This document shows positions 28,009 through 36,410 of a DNA stretch of 64,000 nt, piece by piece. A program made the position numbers and the translations under genes. A model generated the notes under the pieces. It was not told where the DNA came from, made no database searches, and saw nothing but the letters and a program-made list of their open reading frames with translations. How positions within the stretch are numbered: position 1 is the stretch's first letter; every line of letters starts with the position of its first letter. This stretch comes from Salpingoeca rosetta (taxonomy: Eukaryota; Protista; Choanoflagellata), in the NCBI GenBank assembly GCA_033442325.1, contig JAWQFM010000022.1, forward strand, positions 248,001-312,000. The letters are read 5' to 3'.

Positions 28009-29577
28009 TACACACACACACAAATACACACAAATACACACACGTACACAAATACACACAAATACACACACGTACACAAACACATTGCTACACACCTGCA
28101 TGGCGAGGCCGATGTCGTGCTTGTCCGACCAGGAGTTGACAATGTCGATGATAAACGGCTGCATAGCGTGCACATGGTCGACGTGTGGCGGATCAAGCAG
28201 CTTGTGCGTGTGCATTTTCCCGCCAATCTCGGCCTTGGTGTGATGGCACAGCACGTCCAGTGCCTTTAGCGTCGTCGTGTCGCCCTGCCAACGCCGTGAC
28301 AAGTCGAGGACGCAGAGAGAGGTGATTGGTCGGGGCTCGCGCACATGCGGGCTAACACACACACGCACACACACGCACACACACACACACACACACTCTC
28401 TCTCTCTCACACACACACACGCACGCACGCACACACTCAAACCCCTGTTGCTTACGCTGACGAGCTGTGCGAGGAGCCGGACAATGAGCATGGCAGACGT
28501 CGTCTCCGGCGGCGTGTGCACTTGCCTGCAGTTGAGGCCATCACATGACACGCGCACACAATGGATGAGTATGTCAGTTGTTGGTCAACGGACAGCAGTG
28601 CTATCATGTGGTGCTGAGGAAATGGTGTTACATATGTGTGTGTGTGTGTATGCGCGCGTGTGGCGACACTGCGCTTGACAAGCAGGAAGCAAGTAAAGCA
28701 TGCAGACGTGCAGACGTGCAGATGCCATCGCATGCGCAGCGGGGGACATTGTACGAGAAAAGACAACTTCAACGAATACGGGCGTACATCCAGGCCTCTT
28801 CCAGGGCGGTGAGCAGGGCGGCGCGTTGGGGGTCGCCGGGACAGAGGACCTTGTGGTGCAGCTGCCATGCCTTGTCACGGCATGCCTCATTGCAATACAC
28901 CTCCTCGCACTGCGTGCAAGTCACGCGTTCCCGGCCGTTGTTTGGGCACAGCTCGGGGTGCGGCAGCTTCACGTCTTGCCCAGCAAGGCGGCTATCCAAT
29001 GGGCGTTGTGTCCCAAGCAAGCAAGAAAAAGACAGTCGTGGCAAAACCAAGGTGTGTGGGCCATGAATACAGGACCAATGCAAGTTCATTGCGGATGTGT
29101 GTGTGTGCATGCGTGTGCGTGTATGTGTGCGTGTGCGTGCATGCAGAAGTTGATGGTTAGGAAGACAACAGAAAGCTGTCGTGAACATCATGCAACAAAC
29201 ACGCTGAACTAAATGGGGTGATGTCGTGAGTGAAATGAGCACAACTCACGTGGCCATTGCCTCTGCAGACTCGAGGGAGCGAAGGCAGTGCGAGCACGCA
29301 ACATAGCCACACTTGCGATTCCAGGAAAACTGCCCAGCAAACACACACACACACACGCACACACACACACACACACGACAGACATAGCGCGCATGTGTGT
29401 GAGGAGCGTCAAGACGTGACTTGGCATCGAAACGCGCCACGTACGAAAGAGCGTCGTCACTGGCACATGCAGTGTCGACACAAGTTGGCTCACCTGCGCA
29501 CACACGAAAGGCGTGTCCTTCAGAACAACGTCGCCGACAATGTAGTCCTTGTCAGCCACCAGCCGCCGTTCCGTCAT
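25284..29577 (-). CDS. SMYD5: SET and MYND domain lysine methyltransferase, SMYD5 ortholog (about 12 exons)
   Basis: '[20 protein letters not shown]', 'LPHPELC', MYND 'CTQC...YCNEAC...HHKVLC', 'HTPPETTS', 'EFLDAEGTG...QSAC|NHSCEANA', 'ISYLD', post-SET '[10 protein letters not shown]' and a long acidic C-terminal tail typical of SMYD5. Confidence 0.92.
26499..26720. repeat. (GAT)n followed by (GT)n compound microsatellite in an SMYD5 intron
   Basis: About 20 GAT units followed by interrupted GT repeats. Confidence 0.95.
27274..27348. repeat. (CAT)n microsatellite, intronic
   Basis: About 25 CAT units. Confidence 0.95.
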
Positions 29578-29814
29578 GGTGCTTGTGTAAACAATTGGCA
29601 CAACGCGACGCTGCTCAGTGCAACCGAGAGTCGAAGACGGTGTGCTGTGTGCTGTGCTGTGTGCTTCCACGTGCCTGCTTGTTGCTTGTGCTTGTTTGTG
29701 TTTTGCTCCTTGCGGGCTTTTTACCAACGCCAGCTGAGTGTGTGGTAAATTCATGGACCGAGTTGGTAAAATCACTGAGCACGTTGGCAAAACCATCGCA
29801 GCAGTGCATGCAGG
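29578..29814. promoter_or_regulatory. Putative bidirectional promoter, SMYD5/EF-hand-metaxin
   Basis: 237-bp spacer between divergent ATGs, with repeated TGGTAAA/TTGGCAAA-like words. Confidence 0.5.
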
Positions 29815-30526
29815 ATGGCGGACGGTGACAAGATGCAGGAGCAGGTGGTGCGACGGCTGTTTCGAGCCTGGGACCTGGATGGAAACGGCTCCTTGTCGCA
29901 CACGGAGGTGAAGCGAGCCATCCGCGCGCACCCGGCGTTGCGCAAGCACATCACAAAGGAAGTTGGACCGCACTGGCAGGTAAGATGTTCAAGACACGCA
30001 TGTAGTGTATGTGTGTGTGTCTGTGTGTGCGTGTGCGTATGTGTGTGTGAGTGTGTCTGTGTGTGTCTGTGTGTGTATGTGTGTGTCTGTGTGTGTCTGT
30101 GTGTGTCTGTGTGTGTGTTGTGTGTGTGTGTGTATGTGTCTGCCTGTGTACGCACTTGTGTACATGTGTGCTTCGTACTGTCCTGCAGCCCCTTGGTGTC
30201 ACCGTTTGCCGTCGCCTTCGACCTACCTTCTTCGCCACCTGCGTGCCACCACCTTCTGCCGCTCATATGTGTGGTCTTCAATTCTACAGCAATTGTTTGA
30301 TGACTTGGACACGAACCATGATGGCATGATTGAGGAGCAAGAGCTGGCGGACTTCTTCCGCAAGCACGGCTTCAGCATCCCACTCACACTGGTGGAGGAC
30401 GTCATCAAATCAACCGAACAGCAACAACAACAACAGCAGCAGCAACAACAACAACAAGGGCAACAAGAGCCACGAGAGTCAGCTGCGACGCCTGCAGCCG
30501 CCACAATGAGCGCGCCACAGCAGCAG

Positions 30527-30570
<44 letters not shown>

Positions 30571-31779
30571 GCAGCCTCAAGACGAATCGACCGTACATCA
30601 ACAACTATTGCAAGAGGCGTCTGCCATCCTGTCACGAACTCCACGGGATGGCTCGACACAGCTCACCCTCTACCAGCAACCACCAGGTGTGTGTGTGTGT
30701 GTGTGTGTCTGTGTGTCTGTGTGTGTGTGTGTCTGTGTGTGTGTGTGTGTCTGTGTGTCTGTGTGTGTGTGTGTGTCTGTCTGTCTGTCTGTCTGTGTCT
30801 GTCTCTTTGTGTGTGTCTTTGTGTCTGTGCATGTGTGTCTGACTTCGTGCACATGCCTGTCCCTCTGTGTTTTGTTTCTTGTCTGCCCGTCTCTGCCTCG
30901 CTGTTTGCTTTGCCTCACACGCCTTCCCTCTCCTTTCGTCACAGCCTGGGGTGTGTGCTCCAGTTCCCCTGTGAGCATCGCAATCCAATCCTTTTGCACC
31001 TTCCACCAGGTACAGCCAACGTGCCTCCTTGTTGTGTGTGTGTGTGTGTGCTCGTTGTGCGCACGTGACTTGAACGTTGTCTTCATCCATCGCCATCACC
31101 ACCACCGCGGCAACCATCCCTCACGCTTTCTGCCTCCCCCCACCCATCAATATCCTCCAACGCAGATCCCGTTCCAAGTCGTCAACACAACCAACACCGC
31201 CATGTCCACACGAGGTGTGGTGCCCAAGCATGTGAATGCATCACGCTCCCATCGTTTTCTTTTTTCGCGTATGCCCGTTCTTCGCCTTATTCATATCTTC
31301 CTCTTGCTCCTCGCCTCCACCAATCAACCACGAACTTAAAACACCAACCACTCACCCCCAACCCCTCCACTCCCTTCCTTCCTCCGTGTCACCTGACACC
31401 GCCTGCTGCTGCAGACGTGCTGCCACTTCTTCGTGTCGGCGCGGACCGCGTGCTGGAGACACCAGAGGCCATCTTCCAGCACCTCAGCAAAGTGCGTACG
31501 TGCGTGTGTGTGTGGGGGGGGTACTGGAAAGAAGGGAGTGCTCTTTGTGTATGACATTACGCGCACACAATGTGGAGGCACTGTCATGCGCGCACACTTT
31601 CGCACATGCTCACATTCACATGCACATTCACCACCACCAACAGCTATCAGATGCAAATGACACTAACGGCAGCAGCGGTGGCGATGAAACGAGTGCGGAC
31701 GTGAGCGCATATCTCGCCCTCGTCCTGCCGCTCTTCAACATCGCGGTAAGGACACACACGCACGTACACGCACACACAT

Positions 31780-31874
<95 letters not shown>

Positions 31875-32736
31875 CACACACTCTCGCACACACGCACGCA
31901 CATGCACACTGGTTCATGCAGCGCTCACGATGTGCGCTTGTGCCGTGTGGCAACTGCGTTGCTGCTCCACAGGAAACACTGGTGTGGGAGGAGGCCGGCA
32001 ACCGGGTGGCTGTTGGGCAGGATGAGCTGTGCACATATCCGTGGCCGCTGCAGGTGCTGCTGGCGTGGCGCAGAAGAGTCGCCGCACGCACCGCCGCACA
32101 CACGCGCAGGCAATTCCAGCCCGCTGACGTCAGTAGTGTTACGAGAGAGAGAGTGTGTGTGTGTGTGTGGGTGGGTGCGTGTGTGTGTGTGTGTGTGTGT
32201 GGGTGTGTGGGTGTGGGTGCGTGTTGCATGCGTGCAGTTGCTTCCACGGTCTTGACACACGAACCGCTGCCCATCGCTGTTCAGGTTGAGCAGGAGATTG
32301 ACGACATCTTCTGCGCTGTGAGCGCAAAGCTCGCCACATGCGCCCCGCACATCGTCGCAAACAGGTGGCGTGCCCAAGCTACTGTCGTTCGCTGGTAATG
32401 CTGGTGGTGCTGGTGCCGGTGATGGTGCTGGTGCTGGTATTGGGAGTGGTGACAAGATGCTGGTGCTGGTGCTGGTGGTATTGGGGGTGGTGGTGGTGAA
32501 GAGATGTGCGTAATGTTATGTAACACCAACGCTGACCGCATTCCCATCTCACACCACGTCCCCACGCGCGCCTGCTTGGACACACCAACAGGTTTACGTT
32601 TGTGGATGCGGTTGTGTATGGGGTGCTGGCGTGGGCGCTGCACGCACCGCTGGCCGTCAACCCGTTCAAGTCGCGACTTGAGCGCTTCCCGGTCCTCCTC
32701 TCCTTCTACCACGAACTCCAACGCATCCTCGATTGA
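29815..32736 (+). CDS. EF-hand pair + polyQ linker + metaxin (MTX2/Sam35-like GST-fold) fusion, about 411 aa, 9 exons
   Basis: Exons 29815-29979, 30290-30686, 30945-31009, 31166-31214, 31415-31491, 31644-31745, 31973-32128, 32285-32364 and 32592-32736 are all GT-AG and phase-consistent. EF loops are DLDGNGSLSHTE and DTNHDGMIEEQE. Metaxin motifs: 'TLYQQPP-AWG..SPVSIAIQSF', 'AMSTRDVLPLLRVG', 'YPWPLQVLLAW', 'AVSAKL', 'TFVDAVVYGVL'. Confidence 0.82.
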
Positions 32737-32993
32737 ACGGGGGAGCGACGTGTGTGTGTGGGGGGGGGGTGTCTGTGTGTGTCTGTCTATGTCTGTGTGT
32801 GTATCTGTGTGTGTCTGCGTGTGTGTGTCCGTCCATCTGTCCGCCTGTCTGTCATTTTGTTCTTTAATGTGGCTGCATGCTGCTTGTGATGTTCACTTGA
32901 CAAGCCAATACACAACTTCGCCATCGTTTATTGCAAAGAACTACAGCACCACCAGTTGGTTACACCTCCACCACCACCACCACCACTGACTCA

Positions 32994-35900
32994 TCAGCAG
33001 TACAGCTGCACCAGCCACTGGTTTGCGGCCTCCAGGGCCCCTGTCAGCGCTTGCTGCGCACACGCCAACACCTCCACCCCGCCCTGCCACGGATCAGGAT
33101 CATGCGGTGCAAGGTCGCTTCCCAGCTGCCGTTCCTGCTGCTGGTTGTGGTTGTGGCAGCGTGGTTGTTGCACTGGCTCTGATGTCTGAGATGATGTTGG
33201 CGCAGGAGTGGTGGTGGCCGTTGTGGTGGTCGCCCTGCCCGTTGTTGCTGCTGCTGCTGTTGCTGCTGCTGCTGTTGTTGTGGTGGTGGTGGTGGTGGGG
33301 GTAATGACACCTGGCTGACGGCGTGACGATTGCGATGGAGGAGCTTTGATCCACTTGACCATGTCCTCCAGAAAGGAGATGAATGCCGTGCCCCACACCT
33401 CGTCTGTGTCGCTGTCGAGCGTTGAGGCAACCTGAACAGCGCACACCAATCACGACACCAGCGGGCAACATCAGCATGCAGCCATCATGACATGAGTGCA
33501 TCTTCACACACGCACACGTGCCCGCTCACACACACACACGCACACACGCACACGTGCCCGCTCACACACTCACACACACACACGCACACACACACACGCA
33601 CACACACACACACGCACACACACACACACATGTACCTGGGCTGCGAGCAGGGAGAACCAGAGCAAGAGGTCTGGCTGCGCCGGTGCTACAACAGCCTTGA
33701 GATGTATCGCCAGCGCAGCCATGTCCCGCGATGATGCAGGTGATGTGAACGGAAGGAACGCGCGCACACAGCACGCCTTCCACGCTGCGCGCCACCAACA
33801 CACGTCCACGCTCCCACCGTCATCAGCTGCTGCTGTTGCTGTTGCACATTTGCCTCCCCCACCACGAACACCACCATCACCACCACCACCACGAACACCA
33901 CCATCACCACGATCACCACGACCTCCTCCCTCAGTGGCATCCCCCGCGACCAGCCCGGCCATCACGGCGACAACGGCGCCAAAATCCGCCGCTGCTGCGA
34001 TGCGATCCAGAGTCTGCAGCACTGTAGTCGAACCGTCTTCATGTACGTGCTGGCACTGCTCTGCTGCTGCTGCTGCTGCTGCTGCTGTGGTTTCTCCTCT
34101 CTCTGCTGTCTCTTCTGCTGTGCAGGCTGCTGTGCCTTCGGCTGTTTCTCGTGTGCTTCGTGCTGCCAAAGTCGCCTCAGTCGCCACACAGCCAGATGCA
34201 CGGAGCACAGCTGCGAACAACACCGCATACGCGTTGTGTGCCCCCTTGTGCTGTTGACGCTGCGTGTGTATGTGCAGCAACGCTGCAATTGCCCGCACCT
34301 CCACCTCCACCTCCACACACGCCATCGCCACCACGCGCTGTCCACCAAGCATCCTCAACTCCTGCGCAACCGCCTGCAGCCCACCATGCACATGCACCTG
34401 CTGCTGCTGCTGCTGCTGCTGCTGCATAAACGGGATGCGTGCCACCATATGGTGTCGCGGACGGCTGTAGATGAGATGGGCGGATGGCGGGCAGGCGGAG
34501 AGACGCGCAGTAGCAGATGGCTGTGATGACCGTGCCAGAAACGATGATGATGATGATGATGATGATGATGGTCGTGGCACTGGTGATGAGGACGGTGGCT
34601 GCGCCGGCCCAGACTGCTGTGTGGTGCACGTGGTGGCGTGCAGGGATGTGAGGAGAATGGAGATTCCCACGCGAGTGATGACGCTGAGATGTGACGACGC
34701 CACCAGCTGCAGCAACGTGTCATGCACGCGAAGAAGCAGCGCCGTCGATTGCCCACACGCGCGCACCATCAGCATCCGTTGCGCCCGGGTGTGCATGGAT
34801 GCGAACACTGGCAGCGCCAGCGCCGTACAGCTGCCCCTGCTTGACGCTGTGCCATGTGCATGTGCTGGCGCCTGTGATGCCAGGTCGGGCGCGTGTGCAG
34901 ATGCGCGTGTGCGCTGCGGCTCGCGGAGGGCTCGCTGCGCCGTGCCCCCTTTGTGCGGCTGGACTATGGTGCGCAGCGTGTGGAAGAGAGCGTCTGCCAA
35001 GAGGGCGTCGCTGGACAGCCAGAGCGATGCGGCCGCGGGTGCCGGTATTGTGGCAAGATCAACCCCACACTGCATCTGCAGGGCCTGACCAAATGCCAGG
35101 GGAAGGCCATGGCGTGCACACCCTTGGTGGCGTGGGTCGTGTTGGTCGTGTTGGTGGTGGTCCCGTCGATGATCGCGCTGTTGCTCCTGACGCTCCTGAC
35201 GCTCCTGACGATGGTGATGCTGGCGATGGTGATGGTAAGGAGAGGCATCATCGGCGCTGATTGCCTGATGACCTGCCAAGGTGGAGTGGCGGGACTGTGC
35301 CTTGAGTTGAGCGAGGACAGAAGATATGCTGCGGCTGTGGCTGGTGAAACCGCTCAAGCCAGTGCTTGTTGCTGTTGTTGCTGCTGCTGCTGCTGATGAT
35401 GCTGCTACGTCATAGCGAGGCTGACGGTGGTGACGGCCGCTTGTGCGTGGCCGCTTGGCTGGAGGGGCACCACCTTCCTCGCTGTTCCAGGTCTTGCACG
35501 AGCAAAGCGGAGCACGTGCAAGGACAGCTGCAACGGCAATGGCTAGGGCGCGCGTGTGTCGTGGGTGCTGGTGCCTCATCTCCGGGGTGATTGGATCCAC
35601 AATGGAGGCCACATGCTCCCAAACACACTGGGCACCAGGTATCCTCATCATGCTGCTGCCGCTGCCGCTGTTGTCGATGCTGAGAGACGTGGGCCACATC
35701 ACACTCCCTGCCACATCGTTGTTGAAAAGCCCCACGGCACGCTGCCTTTCCTGCTGATATCGCTGCTGTTGTTGGTGCAGGAGGGTTTTGAGGACACGCA
35801 GCCTGTCTGCTGCCAGCTGGACGTTCTCTGGCATGCGAGTTGGCGGCTTTGGGCTTCGCAGGGTGGATTGTGGCCCCGCATCGCCACTGACAGCAGCAAC

Positions 35901-36410
35901 CACGGTCTGGTGCAGAGCGATTCCACTCGGTTGTCCATTGGCGGATCTTCTTGCTGCAGCTGTGGTTGCAGTTGTGGCTGTGGTTGCAGTTGTGGCTGTG
36001 GTTGCAGTTGTGGCTGTTGGCGTGCTCAGGAGCAAGTGGGGTGGACACGATGCTGGTGCGTGCTGAAGCAGGTGCAAGCACCACTCGTGGGCAGCAGCAT
36101 GCTCATCGTCCAGCGTTTTTGGGATGGCGTGCAGGCTGCCAAAGGCGACAACGCACTTGAAGACGAGCGGCAGCAGCTGCCGTGACCTGGCTACCACAGT
36201 GCTGCCCATCAGCACCTCCAAAAACGCGCCAAAGGATGGCAGCAGCCTCAGGGTGTGCAGGGGCCCGCTGCTTGCCTGAATCACATGATACACCTCCTCC
36301 AGCAACAGCTTTAGCCGACGCGCGTGCTGCACAACTGCCACTTCCACGTCCCCATCCACACTTGCCCACGCGGCCACCGCATCCCGCAGCCCAGCAACAT
36401 CCTCCTCCAT
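32994..36410 (-). CDS. Large helical protein with FANCC-like blocks (exons 36410-33636, 33431-32994)
   Basis: A 925-codon first exon joins a 3' exon through a phase-0 GT-AG intron. Segments 'AWASVDG...[18 protein letters not shown]...LPSFGAFL...LVFKCVV', '[13 protein letters not shown]' and '[18 protein letters not shown]' follow the residue pattern of human FANCC as recalled. Low-complexity inserts separate these blocks. Confidence 0.6.

Follow-up and report, generated by a model that had tools for sequence, protein, structure and literature searches.

The Salpingoeca rosetta locus 29815-32736 holds a predicted plus-strand gene in which a pair of EF-hands is joined through a glutamine-rich linker to a C-terminal region of the GST_C_6 class. 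On balance, we favour the reading that this is one gene composed of an EF-hand pair, a Q-rich linker and a metaxin-type domain, most likely metaxin-2/Sam35, by which Ca2+ would be coupled to metaxin function. All positions refer to the window, i.e., the whole 64-kb stretch of DNA that was analysed. The gene comprises nine exons with GT...AG borders at all eight introns, and the spliced exons add up to 1236 nt, equivalent to 411 codons plus the stop codon, with neither internal stops nor frameshifts; the 411-aa protein proposed in the first-pass annotation was thus recovered. The product would carry the EF-hand pair at residues ~8-85, followed by a linker of ~80 residues and a metaxin-type GST-fold domain of ~235 residues.

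The gene start was placed in exon 1 (29815-29979, 55 codons), because a neighbouring minus-strand gene, divergently oriented and containing a zf-MYND exon, has its start at 29577, only 237 bp upstream, and because the exon 1 ATG is the first after an in-frame TGA at 29776, 36 nt ahead of it. Past exon 1, the only in-frame Met codons preceding the metaxin-like domain are residues 13 and 73 of exon 2; intron 2, when read in frame, contains no ATG. With the neighbouring gene that close and no start codon in intron 2, exons 1 and 2 are the only places where the metaxin-like part can start. Its proposed N-terminal half continues through exons 3 (30945-31009), 4 (31166-31214) and 5 (31415-31491), all with consistent splice sites and frame, followed by the inter-domain region in exon 6 (31644-31745). 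Exon 7 (31973-32128) contains a YPWPL motif, the GST C-terminal domain begins in exon 8 (32285-32364), and the stop codon lies in exon 9 (32592-32736).

The codon-usage log-likelihood favoured the model frame in seven of the nine exons, among them exon 1 (+9.1 bits), exon 5 (+8.7 bits), exon 6 (+10.4 bits), exon 7 (+6.6 bits), exon 8 (+5.7 bits) and exon 9 (+12.2 bits), while the introns carried no signal. The frame was not favoured in exon 3 (-7.2 bits over 65 nt), and codon usage was neutral in exon 4, which at 16 aa is below scannable size. It is very improbable that the model arose by chance from open frames in repeat-rich DNA, or that it describes a pseudogene that is not expressed. The TG-rich introns do give long stop-free frames, such as the 451 codons across exons 2-4, GT/AG choices are numerous, and exons 3 and 4 stand without codon-usage support. 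However, three independent domain matches occur in the correct order, the GST_C_6 match is significant even genome-wide, and wherever a coding signal was obtained it was confined to the model frame, uninterrupted by any frameshift or stop. A 444-aa ORF at 30005-31339 was rejected as a protein, as it consists of exons 2-4 together with the two TG-repeat introns between them, which are free of stops.

A canonical EF-hand loop was taken to be 12 residues long, with Asp at position 1, Gly at 6, a hydrophobic residue at 8 and Glu at 12, and to be flanked by helices. The PROSITE-style pattern matched DLDGNGSLSHTE in exon 1 (29872-29907) and DTNHDGMIEEQE in exon 2 (30308-30343), and no further match occurred among the ~128,000 six-frame positions of the window. 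With Pfam, EF-hand_6 was the match on exon 1 (E 4.2e-6) and EF-hand_7 that on exon 2 (E 1.2e-5), while EF-hand_6/7/1 ranged from E 4e-6 to 8e-5 on each of the two exons. Pattern uniqueness and E-values of about 1e-5 on each exon therefore bear out the two canonical loops described earlier. Once intron 1 (29980-30289; GT...AG, mostly a (TG)n microsatellite) is removed, the loop starts are 41 residues apart, so that the EF-hands form a pair. All liganding positions are canonical in both loops, and Ca2+ binding is predicted from these residues.

The connection between the EF-hands and the downstream domain can be read directly from exon 2 (30290-30686), as the first-pass annotation had pointed out. 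Its first part (30290-30412) encodes EF-hand 2 with the exit helix, its middle (30413-30655) a low-complexity linker with 47% Q and Q runs of 13 and 19, and its end (30656-30686) 'TQLTLYQQPP', which is proposed to form the first strand of the metaxin-like domain. All three lie in a single uninterrupted exon, with no in-frame stop before exon 3. The linker of ~80 Q-rich residues is probably disordered.

An alternative that starts from the same exon is that the main product is a metaxin of ~283 residues without EF-hands, whose translation would start at Met 73 in exon 2 on a transcript beginning in intron 1 or exon 2, with the EF-hand exons confined to a minor isoform or to a short transcript of their own. 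This in-frame Met does lie between the two polyQ runs, and a word search with exon 2 within its open frame returned no database protein containing it among candidates of 244-777 residues. Nevertheless, we consider such a product quite unlikely. No in-frame stop separates the EF-hands from exon 3, the frame being open from 29984 to 31336; the codon usage of exon 1 is of the coding type; and the exon structure is conserved in a paralogue. The database blank says little here, as the same database also missed the neighbouring 946-codon ORF.

The paralogue in question, a gene on contig C1, likewise encodes this EF-hand module in two exons, with the split at an identical codon and phase, which supports the splice between exons 1 and 2. 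Exon 1 shares 40% identity over 47 aa with the first exon of the paralogue, and the residue at which the two exons end is the same; for the second exons, identity is 68% over 22 aa. Both genes carry a two-exon EF-hand pair with the same exon split and a polyQ/acidic linker. In the C1 gene, the EF-hand module is followed by an assembly gap, and downstream there is only a weak Arfaptin/BAR-like match, whereas the partner in the gene described here is metaxin-like.

The class of the C-terminal region was assigned through exon 9, which matched GST_C_6 at ~32587-32712 (E 4.6e-5, profile positions 24-62 of 64) with 23.5 bits, below the gathering cut-off of 28. When the 55-Mb genome was scanned with GST_C_6 in six frames, exon 9 was recovered at E 0.0022 as one of only two loci. 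The nearest ESM Atlas clusters to exon 9 were all GST_C_6 as well, with scores of 0.90-0.94. These sequence comparisons support placing the C-terminal half within the metaxin/FAXC-type GST fold. GST_C_6 is the metaxin/FAXC-type C-terminal domain and is common to metaxins, FAXC and bacterial proteins; the exon 9 match indicates the domain class, not the metaxin-2 subfamily.

The GST_C_6 match already reaches position 62 of 64 and the protein ends 7 residues past it, which leaves no space for a C-terminal transmembrane anchor. The sole hydrophobic peak (Kyte-Doolittle 1.61) falls inside the conserved GST_C_6 helix, in line with the earlier claim that a C-terminal TM is missing. Such an absence is expected of metaxin-2 and separates MTX2 from MTX1/MTX3.

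The assignment to metaxin-2/Sam35 proposed in the first-pass annotation was supported in part. Exons 3, 7 and 9 encode the motifs that it named, SPVSIAIQSF, YPWPL and TFVDAVVYG, and the GST_C_6 class was recovered on exon 9. The N-terminal GST/Tom37 half, on the other hand, found no match exon by exon, and no metaxin was retrieved. Among the domain families considered at that stage, the exon-wise Pfam scan thus returned EF-hand_6/7/1 and, below its cut-off, GST_C_6, but neither Tom37 nor GST_N, and exons 3-8 gave no Pfam family match at all. For the N-terminal GST/Tom37 domain, exons 3 and 5 and the read-through of exons 2-4 were blank, as would be expected even for a true member with pieces of 16-25 residues. 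On the genome scale, Tom37 was found nowhere, and the locus was not among the GST_N_4 matches.

The metaxin-2 identity is argued from the order of the motifs. All nine exons are putatively collinear with human MTX2, with 'TQLTLYQQPP' presumably corresponding to the MTX2 start (shared TLYQQ), AIQSF to AVQAF, YPWPL to an identical motif, and VDAVVYG to LDALVFG; this order would be closer to MTX2 than to FAXC or MTX1. On the basis of this putative correspondence to human MTX2, the C-terminal ~235 residues are most likely the S. rosetta metaxin-2/Sam35 orthologue. Exons 7 and 9 each occur once in the genome, and no other metaxin candidate was found there by GST_C_6, GST_N_4 and Tom37 profile scans or by searches with these two exons.

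The second GST_C_6 locus of the genome, G000:C3:2401575-2403221, is a FAXC-like gene. It shares the Pfam class, but its exons of 40-47 residues have clear GST_N_3/GST_N_4 matches (18-31 bits), and the stretch read contains no EF-hands. GST_N_3/GST_N_4 went undetected in the exons of the EF-hand/metaxin-like gene, which are shorter, so that this contrast is not decisive. The C3 gene was rejected as a metaxin-1 because of its FAXC-like appearance, judged in part by GST_N_3/GST_N_4. GST_N_4 matches on contigs C19 and C10 were rejected as metaxins as well, and were read by us as CLIC/DHAR-like, PTGES2-like and sigma-class GST.

The comparison with the C3 gene also bears on whether the gene is real but its C-terminal half belongs to another GST_C_6 member, either FAXC-like or a lineage-specific GST-fold protein; the protein would then not be the metaxin-2 of the SAM complex, and its EF-hands would regulate something other than beta-barrel assembly. 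GST_C_6 is the only family-level match and is not specific to metaxins, the locus lacks a Tom37 or GST_N_4 match, and no search retrieved a metaxin. We nonetheless regard this alternative as unlikely. A separate FAXC-like gene already exists in the genome, and its exons, of similar size if somewhat longer, match GST_N_3/GST_N_4, unlike those of the gene described here. Furthermore, BLAST detected no similarity between the last exons of the two genes, profile and exon searches of the genome yielded no other metaxin candidate, and the putative motif order would fit MTX2 better than FAXC or MTX1.

Exon-wise searches against 5.8 billion and 1.8 billion proteins, the PDB and metagenomes returned no relative and no metaxin. 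A word search with exons 7 and 8 (lengths 114-362 aa) gave chance matches to translated intron only. With HMMER against the 1.8 billion representatives, exon 7, the intron and exon 8 together gave four matches, all located on or mainly over an intron-derived Cys/Val-rich stretch. Exon 7 produced no match in the metagenome scan and no usable one in the ESM Atlas. The neighbouring 946-codon ORF likewise returned nothing when used as a query, so these database blanks say little and are no proof that the gene is unannotated. No PDB sequence matched exons 7-8 or exon 9 either, which fits the statement that the human SAM complex structure is unsolved (bioRxiv 10.64898/2026.03.15.711473). In the literature searched, no account of an EF-hand-bearing metaxin was found, in agreement with the first-pass statement that known metaxins lack them.

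Metaxin-2/Sam35 is a peripheral subunit of the Sam50 complex on the mitochondrial outer membrane, located at the opening of the Sam50 barrel. Sam35, the homologue of metaxin-2, covers the cytosolic face of Sam50 with its N-terminal region, and an MTX2 knockout is complemented by N-terminally FLAG-tagged MTX2 (bioRxiv 10.64898/2026.03.15.711473). The S. rosetta protein resembles MTX2/Sam35 in its C-terminal module of ~235 residues with a GST_C_6-type end, in the missing C-terminal anchor, in being single copy and, putatively, in the motif order of human MTX2; genes for the partners Sam50 and Miro are both present in the genome. It differs by ~175 extra N-terminal residues, i.e., the EF-hand pair and the polyQ linker.

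Ca2+ control of the Miro-TRAK/metaxin system has so far been attributed to Miro. In animals, Miro, MTX2 and TRAK work together as a complex, and MTX-2 binds MIRO-1 and TRAK-1 (PMC7782850). The Miro (Gem1) GTPases are associated with the outer membrane and sense Ca2+ through a cytosolic EF-hand pair, a location and a function that the S. rosetta protein may share. In contrast to Miro, the gene described here encodes neither a GTPase domain nor EF_assoc domains, and a separate Miro gene exists; the fusion would place the sensor on the metaxin itself.

For the favoured fusion of EF-hand pair and metaxin-type domain, we envisage that the tethered EF-hand pair would bind Ca2+ and that its Ca2+-bound form would switch contacts, either with a partner protein or with the metaxin/SAM surface itself. 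Cytosolic Ca2+ might in this way be coupled to metaxin function, be it beta-barrel assembly or a Miro/TRAK-type positioning of mitochondria. A bolder version, which we put forward as speculative and rather improbable, is that the unicellular organisms most closely related to animals have a metaxin-2-borne Ca2+ sensor for mitochondrial outer-membrane functions, which would gate SAM/MIB activity or motor-adaptor binding beside or instead of the EF-hands of Miro.

A 2021 survey reported metaxin-like proteins to be absent from choanoflagellates (bioRxiv 10.1101/2021.01.05.425400). The gene would fill this gap, in a genome with at least two genes of the GST_C_6 class. If the bolder version above is true, it would represent a second, independent route for Ca2+ control of mitochondrial biogenesis or positioning. 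S. rosetta is amenable to transfection and editing, and a metaxin carrying an EF-hand pair itself would amount to a natural experiment on the point at which Ca2+ enters the SAM/Miro-TRAK machinery.

The studied gene (29815-32736, plus strand) lies in the window G000:C22:248001-312000, and GT and AG dinucleotides on either side of the exons served to delimit them within the stretch 29500-33100. This placed exons 1 to 9 at 29815-29979, 30290-30686, 30945-31009, 31166-31214, 31415-31491, 31644-31745, 31973-32128, 32285-32364 and 32592-32736, all on the plus strand. Together they amount to 1236 nt, or 411 codons plus a TGA with no internal stop, and the 411-aa length given by the first-pass annotation was thereby reproduced. 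Codon usage was scored with a table derived from the neighbouring open exon of 946 codons (33573-36410, minus strand). The model frame ranked first of three in seven of the nine exons (+5.7 to +24.9 bits), exon 4 (49 nt) was neutral, and in exon 3 (65 nt) codon usage spoke against the model frame (-7.2 bits); the introns mostly scored about 0 per codon, with an inconsistent frame preference. With the exon 3 score on one side and the open frame and the seven scoring exons on the other, an artefact or pseudogene at this locus is highly improbable.

A stop-free frame of 451 codons (29984-31336) spans exons 2-4 together with both TG-repeat introns that separate them. An ORF of 444 aa at 30005-31339 in the mechanical ORF list was rejected as a protein, as these exons share a frame and it reads through the stop-free introns. 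Microsatellites of the (TG)n type fill most of introns 1 (29980-30289), 2 (30687-30944) and 7 (32129-32284), and intron 6 (31746-31972) is mostly microsatellite as well, (CA)n followed by (CT)n.

The two canonical EF-hand loops that had been claimed for the N-terminus were borne out by Pfam, with exon 1 alone matching EF-hand_6 (E 4.2e-6) and exon 2 alone matching EF-hand_7 (E 1.2e-5). Both loops, DLDGNGSLSHTE and DTNHDGMIEEQE, fit a PROSITE-style EF-hand pattern. These are its only two matches when all six frames of the 64-kb window are considered, and the starts of the loops lie 41 residues apart once spliced, a spacing that suits an EF-hand pair. The remainder of exon 2 is a linker of 47% Q with runs of 13 and 19 Q, and the exon ends in TQLTLYQQPP; EF-hand 2, the linker and the start of the metaxin-like part are thus on one exon, as had been proposed.

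When the genome was searched with exon 1 and the head of exon 2, a second gene with a paralogous module was found on contig C1 of the S. rosetta assembly (G000:C1:3352451-3353791). Its first exon is 40% identical to exon 1 over 47 residues and stops at the same residue (HWK vs HWQ) in phase 0, and its second exon opens with 22 residues that are 68% identical to exon 2, followed by a long acidic segment and a linker with roughly 40 Q. As the EF-hand split is kept, the C1 gene independently supports the splice between exons 1 and 2, and the EF-hand pair with a low-complexity linker is an N-terminal module reused in this genome. 3' of the C1 module lie an assembly gap and then exons, perhaps of the same gene, whose sole match is a weak Arfaptin/BAR-like one (E 0.012). 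Five EF-hand exons in tandem, 34-37% identical to exon 1, were observed at G000:C3:566072-570516; this local family may be a source of copied EF-hand modules.

An in-frame TGA precedes the ATG at 29815 by 36 nt, and a divergent neighbour (28772-29577, minus strand) starts at 29577 and runs leftward, with a MYND zinc finger exon (Pfam E 5.7e-5) that looks SMYD-like by eye. The two genes stand head to head with start codons 237 bp apart, which leaves no space for further 5' exons and suggests a common bidirectional promoter. On the 3' side, 257 bp separate the stop codon from the end, at 32994, of an ORF on the minus strand. Exon 1 aside, in-frame Met codons before the metaxin-like domain occur only at residues 13 and 73 of exon 2, and intron 2 has none when translated in the frame that exons 2 and 3 share; the metaxin-like part is therefore not a separate gene starting 3' of exon 2. 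A form without EF-hands is possible only via a transcript starting inside intron 1 or exon 2, with translation from Met 73 of exon 2, and with the splice between exons 1 and 2 supported by the C1 gene, it is quite unlikely that such a transcript dominates.

At the C-terminus, exon 9 alone matched positions 24-62 of 64 of GST_C_6, the Pfam class of metaxin/FAXC-type GST C-terminal domains (E 4.6e-5), at 23.5 bits, which falls below the cut-off of 28 bits. When the entire genome (55.4 Mb, 68 contigs) was scanned in six frames, exon 9 was one of only two loci (E 0.0022), its closest ESM-Atlas clusters were GST_C_6 families (scores 0.90-0.94), and exons 7 and 9 each occur as a single copy. Of the metaxin-type GST fold drawn downstream by the first-pass annotation, the GST_C_6 class of exon 9 held, while exons 3-8, taken one by one, gave no Pfam family match. 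The absence of a C-terminal transmembrane segment was upheld, because the protein ends 7 residues past the GST_C_6 match and its sole hydrophobic peak sits within the conserved helix of that domain. Such an anchor tells metaxin-1, which has a C-terminal helix of this kind, from metaxin-2, which does not.

Tom37 had no match anywhere in the genome. No metaxin was found in two exon-wise word searches, in a full HMMER run against 1.8 billion representatives (intron-derived chance matches only), in the ESM Atlas or JGI metagenomes queried with exon 7, or in the PDB queried with exons 7-8 and with exon 9. Since the exon-wise queries had only 16-52 residues against databases of billions of sequences, these blanks reflect a limit of power and are not evidence against homology. 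The neighbouring 946-codon ORF also remained blank, in Pfam and in a word search of 5.8 billion proteins, and so the blanks were not read as the locus being unannotated.

All nine exons appear to be collinear with human metaxin-2 (MTX2), whose motifs fit at TLYQQ, at AIQSF (AVQAF), at YPWPL (identical) and at VDAVVYG (LDALVFG). The specific metaxin-2 call derives from this motif comparison and is a lead, not a test; on balance, a real EF-hand-metaxin-2 fusion is somewhat favoured. That the fusion is real and its partner another GST_C_6 protein would also accommodate the exon 9 match, fits the order of the motifs less well, and seems unlikely to us. The other GST_C_6 locus, at G000:C3:2401575-2403221 (also delimited as G000:C3:2401524-2403199), has clear GST_N_3/GST_N_4 exons besides GST_C_6, is presumably FAXC-like, and showed no BLAST similarity to exon 9. 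The remaining GST_N_4 matches in the genome seem to be GSTs of CLIC/DHAR-like, PTGES2-like and sigma-class type.

The genome also encodes Sam50 (Omp85 domain, E 4.6e-18) and Miro (EF_assoc_2, 28.7 bits). Metaxin-2 is a homologue of yeast Sam35, and human MTX2 tolerates an extension at its N-terminus, since the protein with an N-terminal FLAG complemented a knockout (bioRxiv 10.64898/2026.03.15.711473). MIRO-1 and TRAK-1 are binding partners of MTX-2 in neurons of C. elegans and humans, and calcium control in this system is ascribed to the EF-hands of Miro (PMC7782850). No paper on a metaxin with EF-hands was found, the literature naming both being concerned with Miro, nor one on S. rosetta together with metaxin. 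Given the Sam50 and Miro genes and the metaxin-2 literature, a peripheral SAM/metaxin subunit is the most likely working model. The EF-hand pair would then be a Ca2+ sensor on a flexible tether at the cytosolic side of this subunit, and the Ca2+-bound sensor would contact either the complex or a partner; whatever goes beyond the fusion of an EF-hand pair to a protein of the GST_C_6 class we infer. With the gene on contig C3, the studied gene makes two GST_C_6-class genes in one choanoflagellate, although a 2021 survey reported no metaxin-like proteins in choanoflagellates (bioRxiv 10.1101/2021.01.05.425400).
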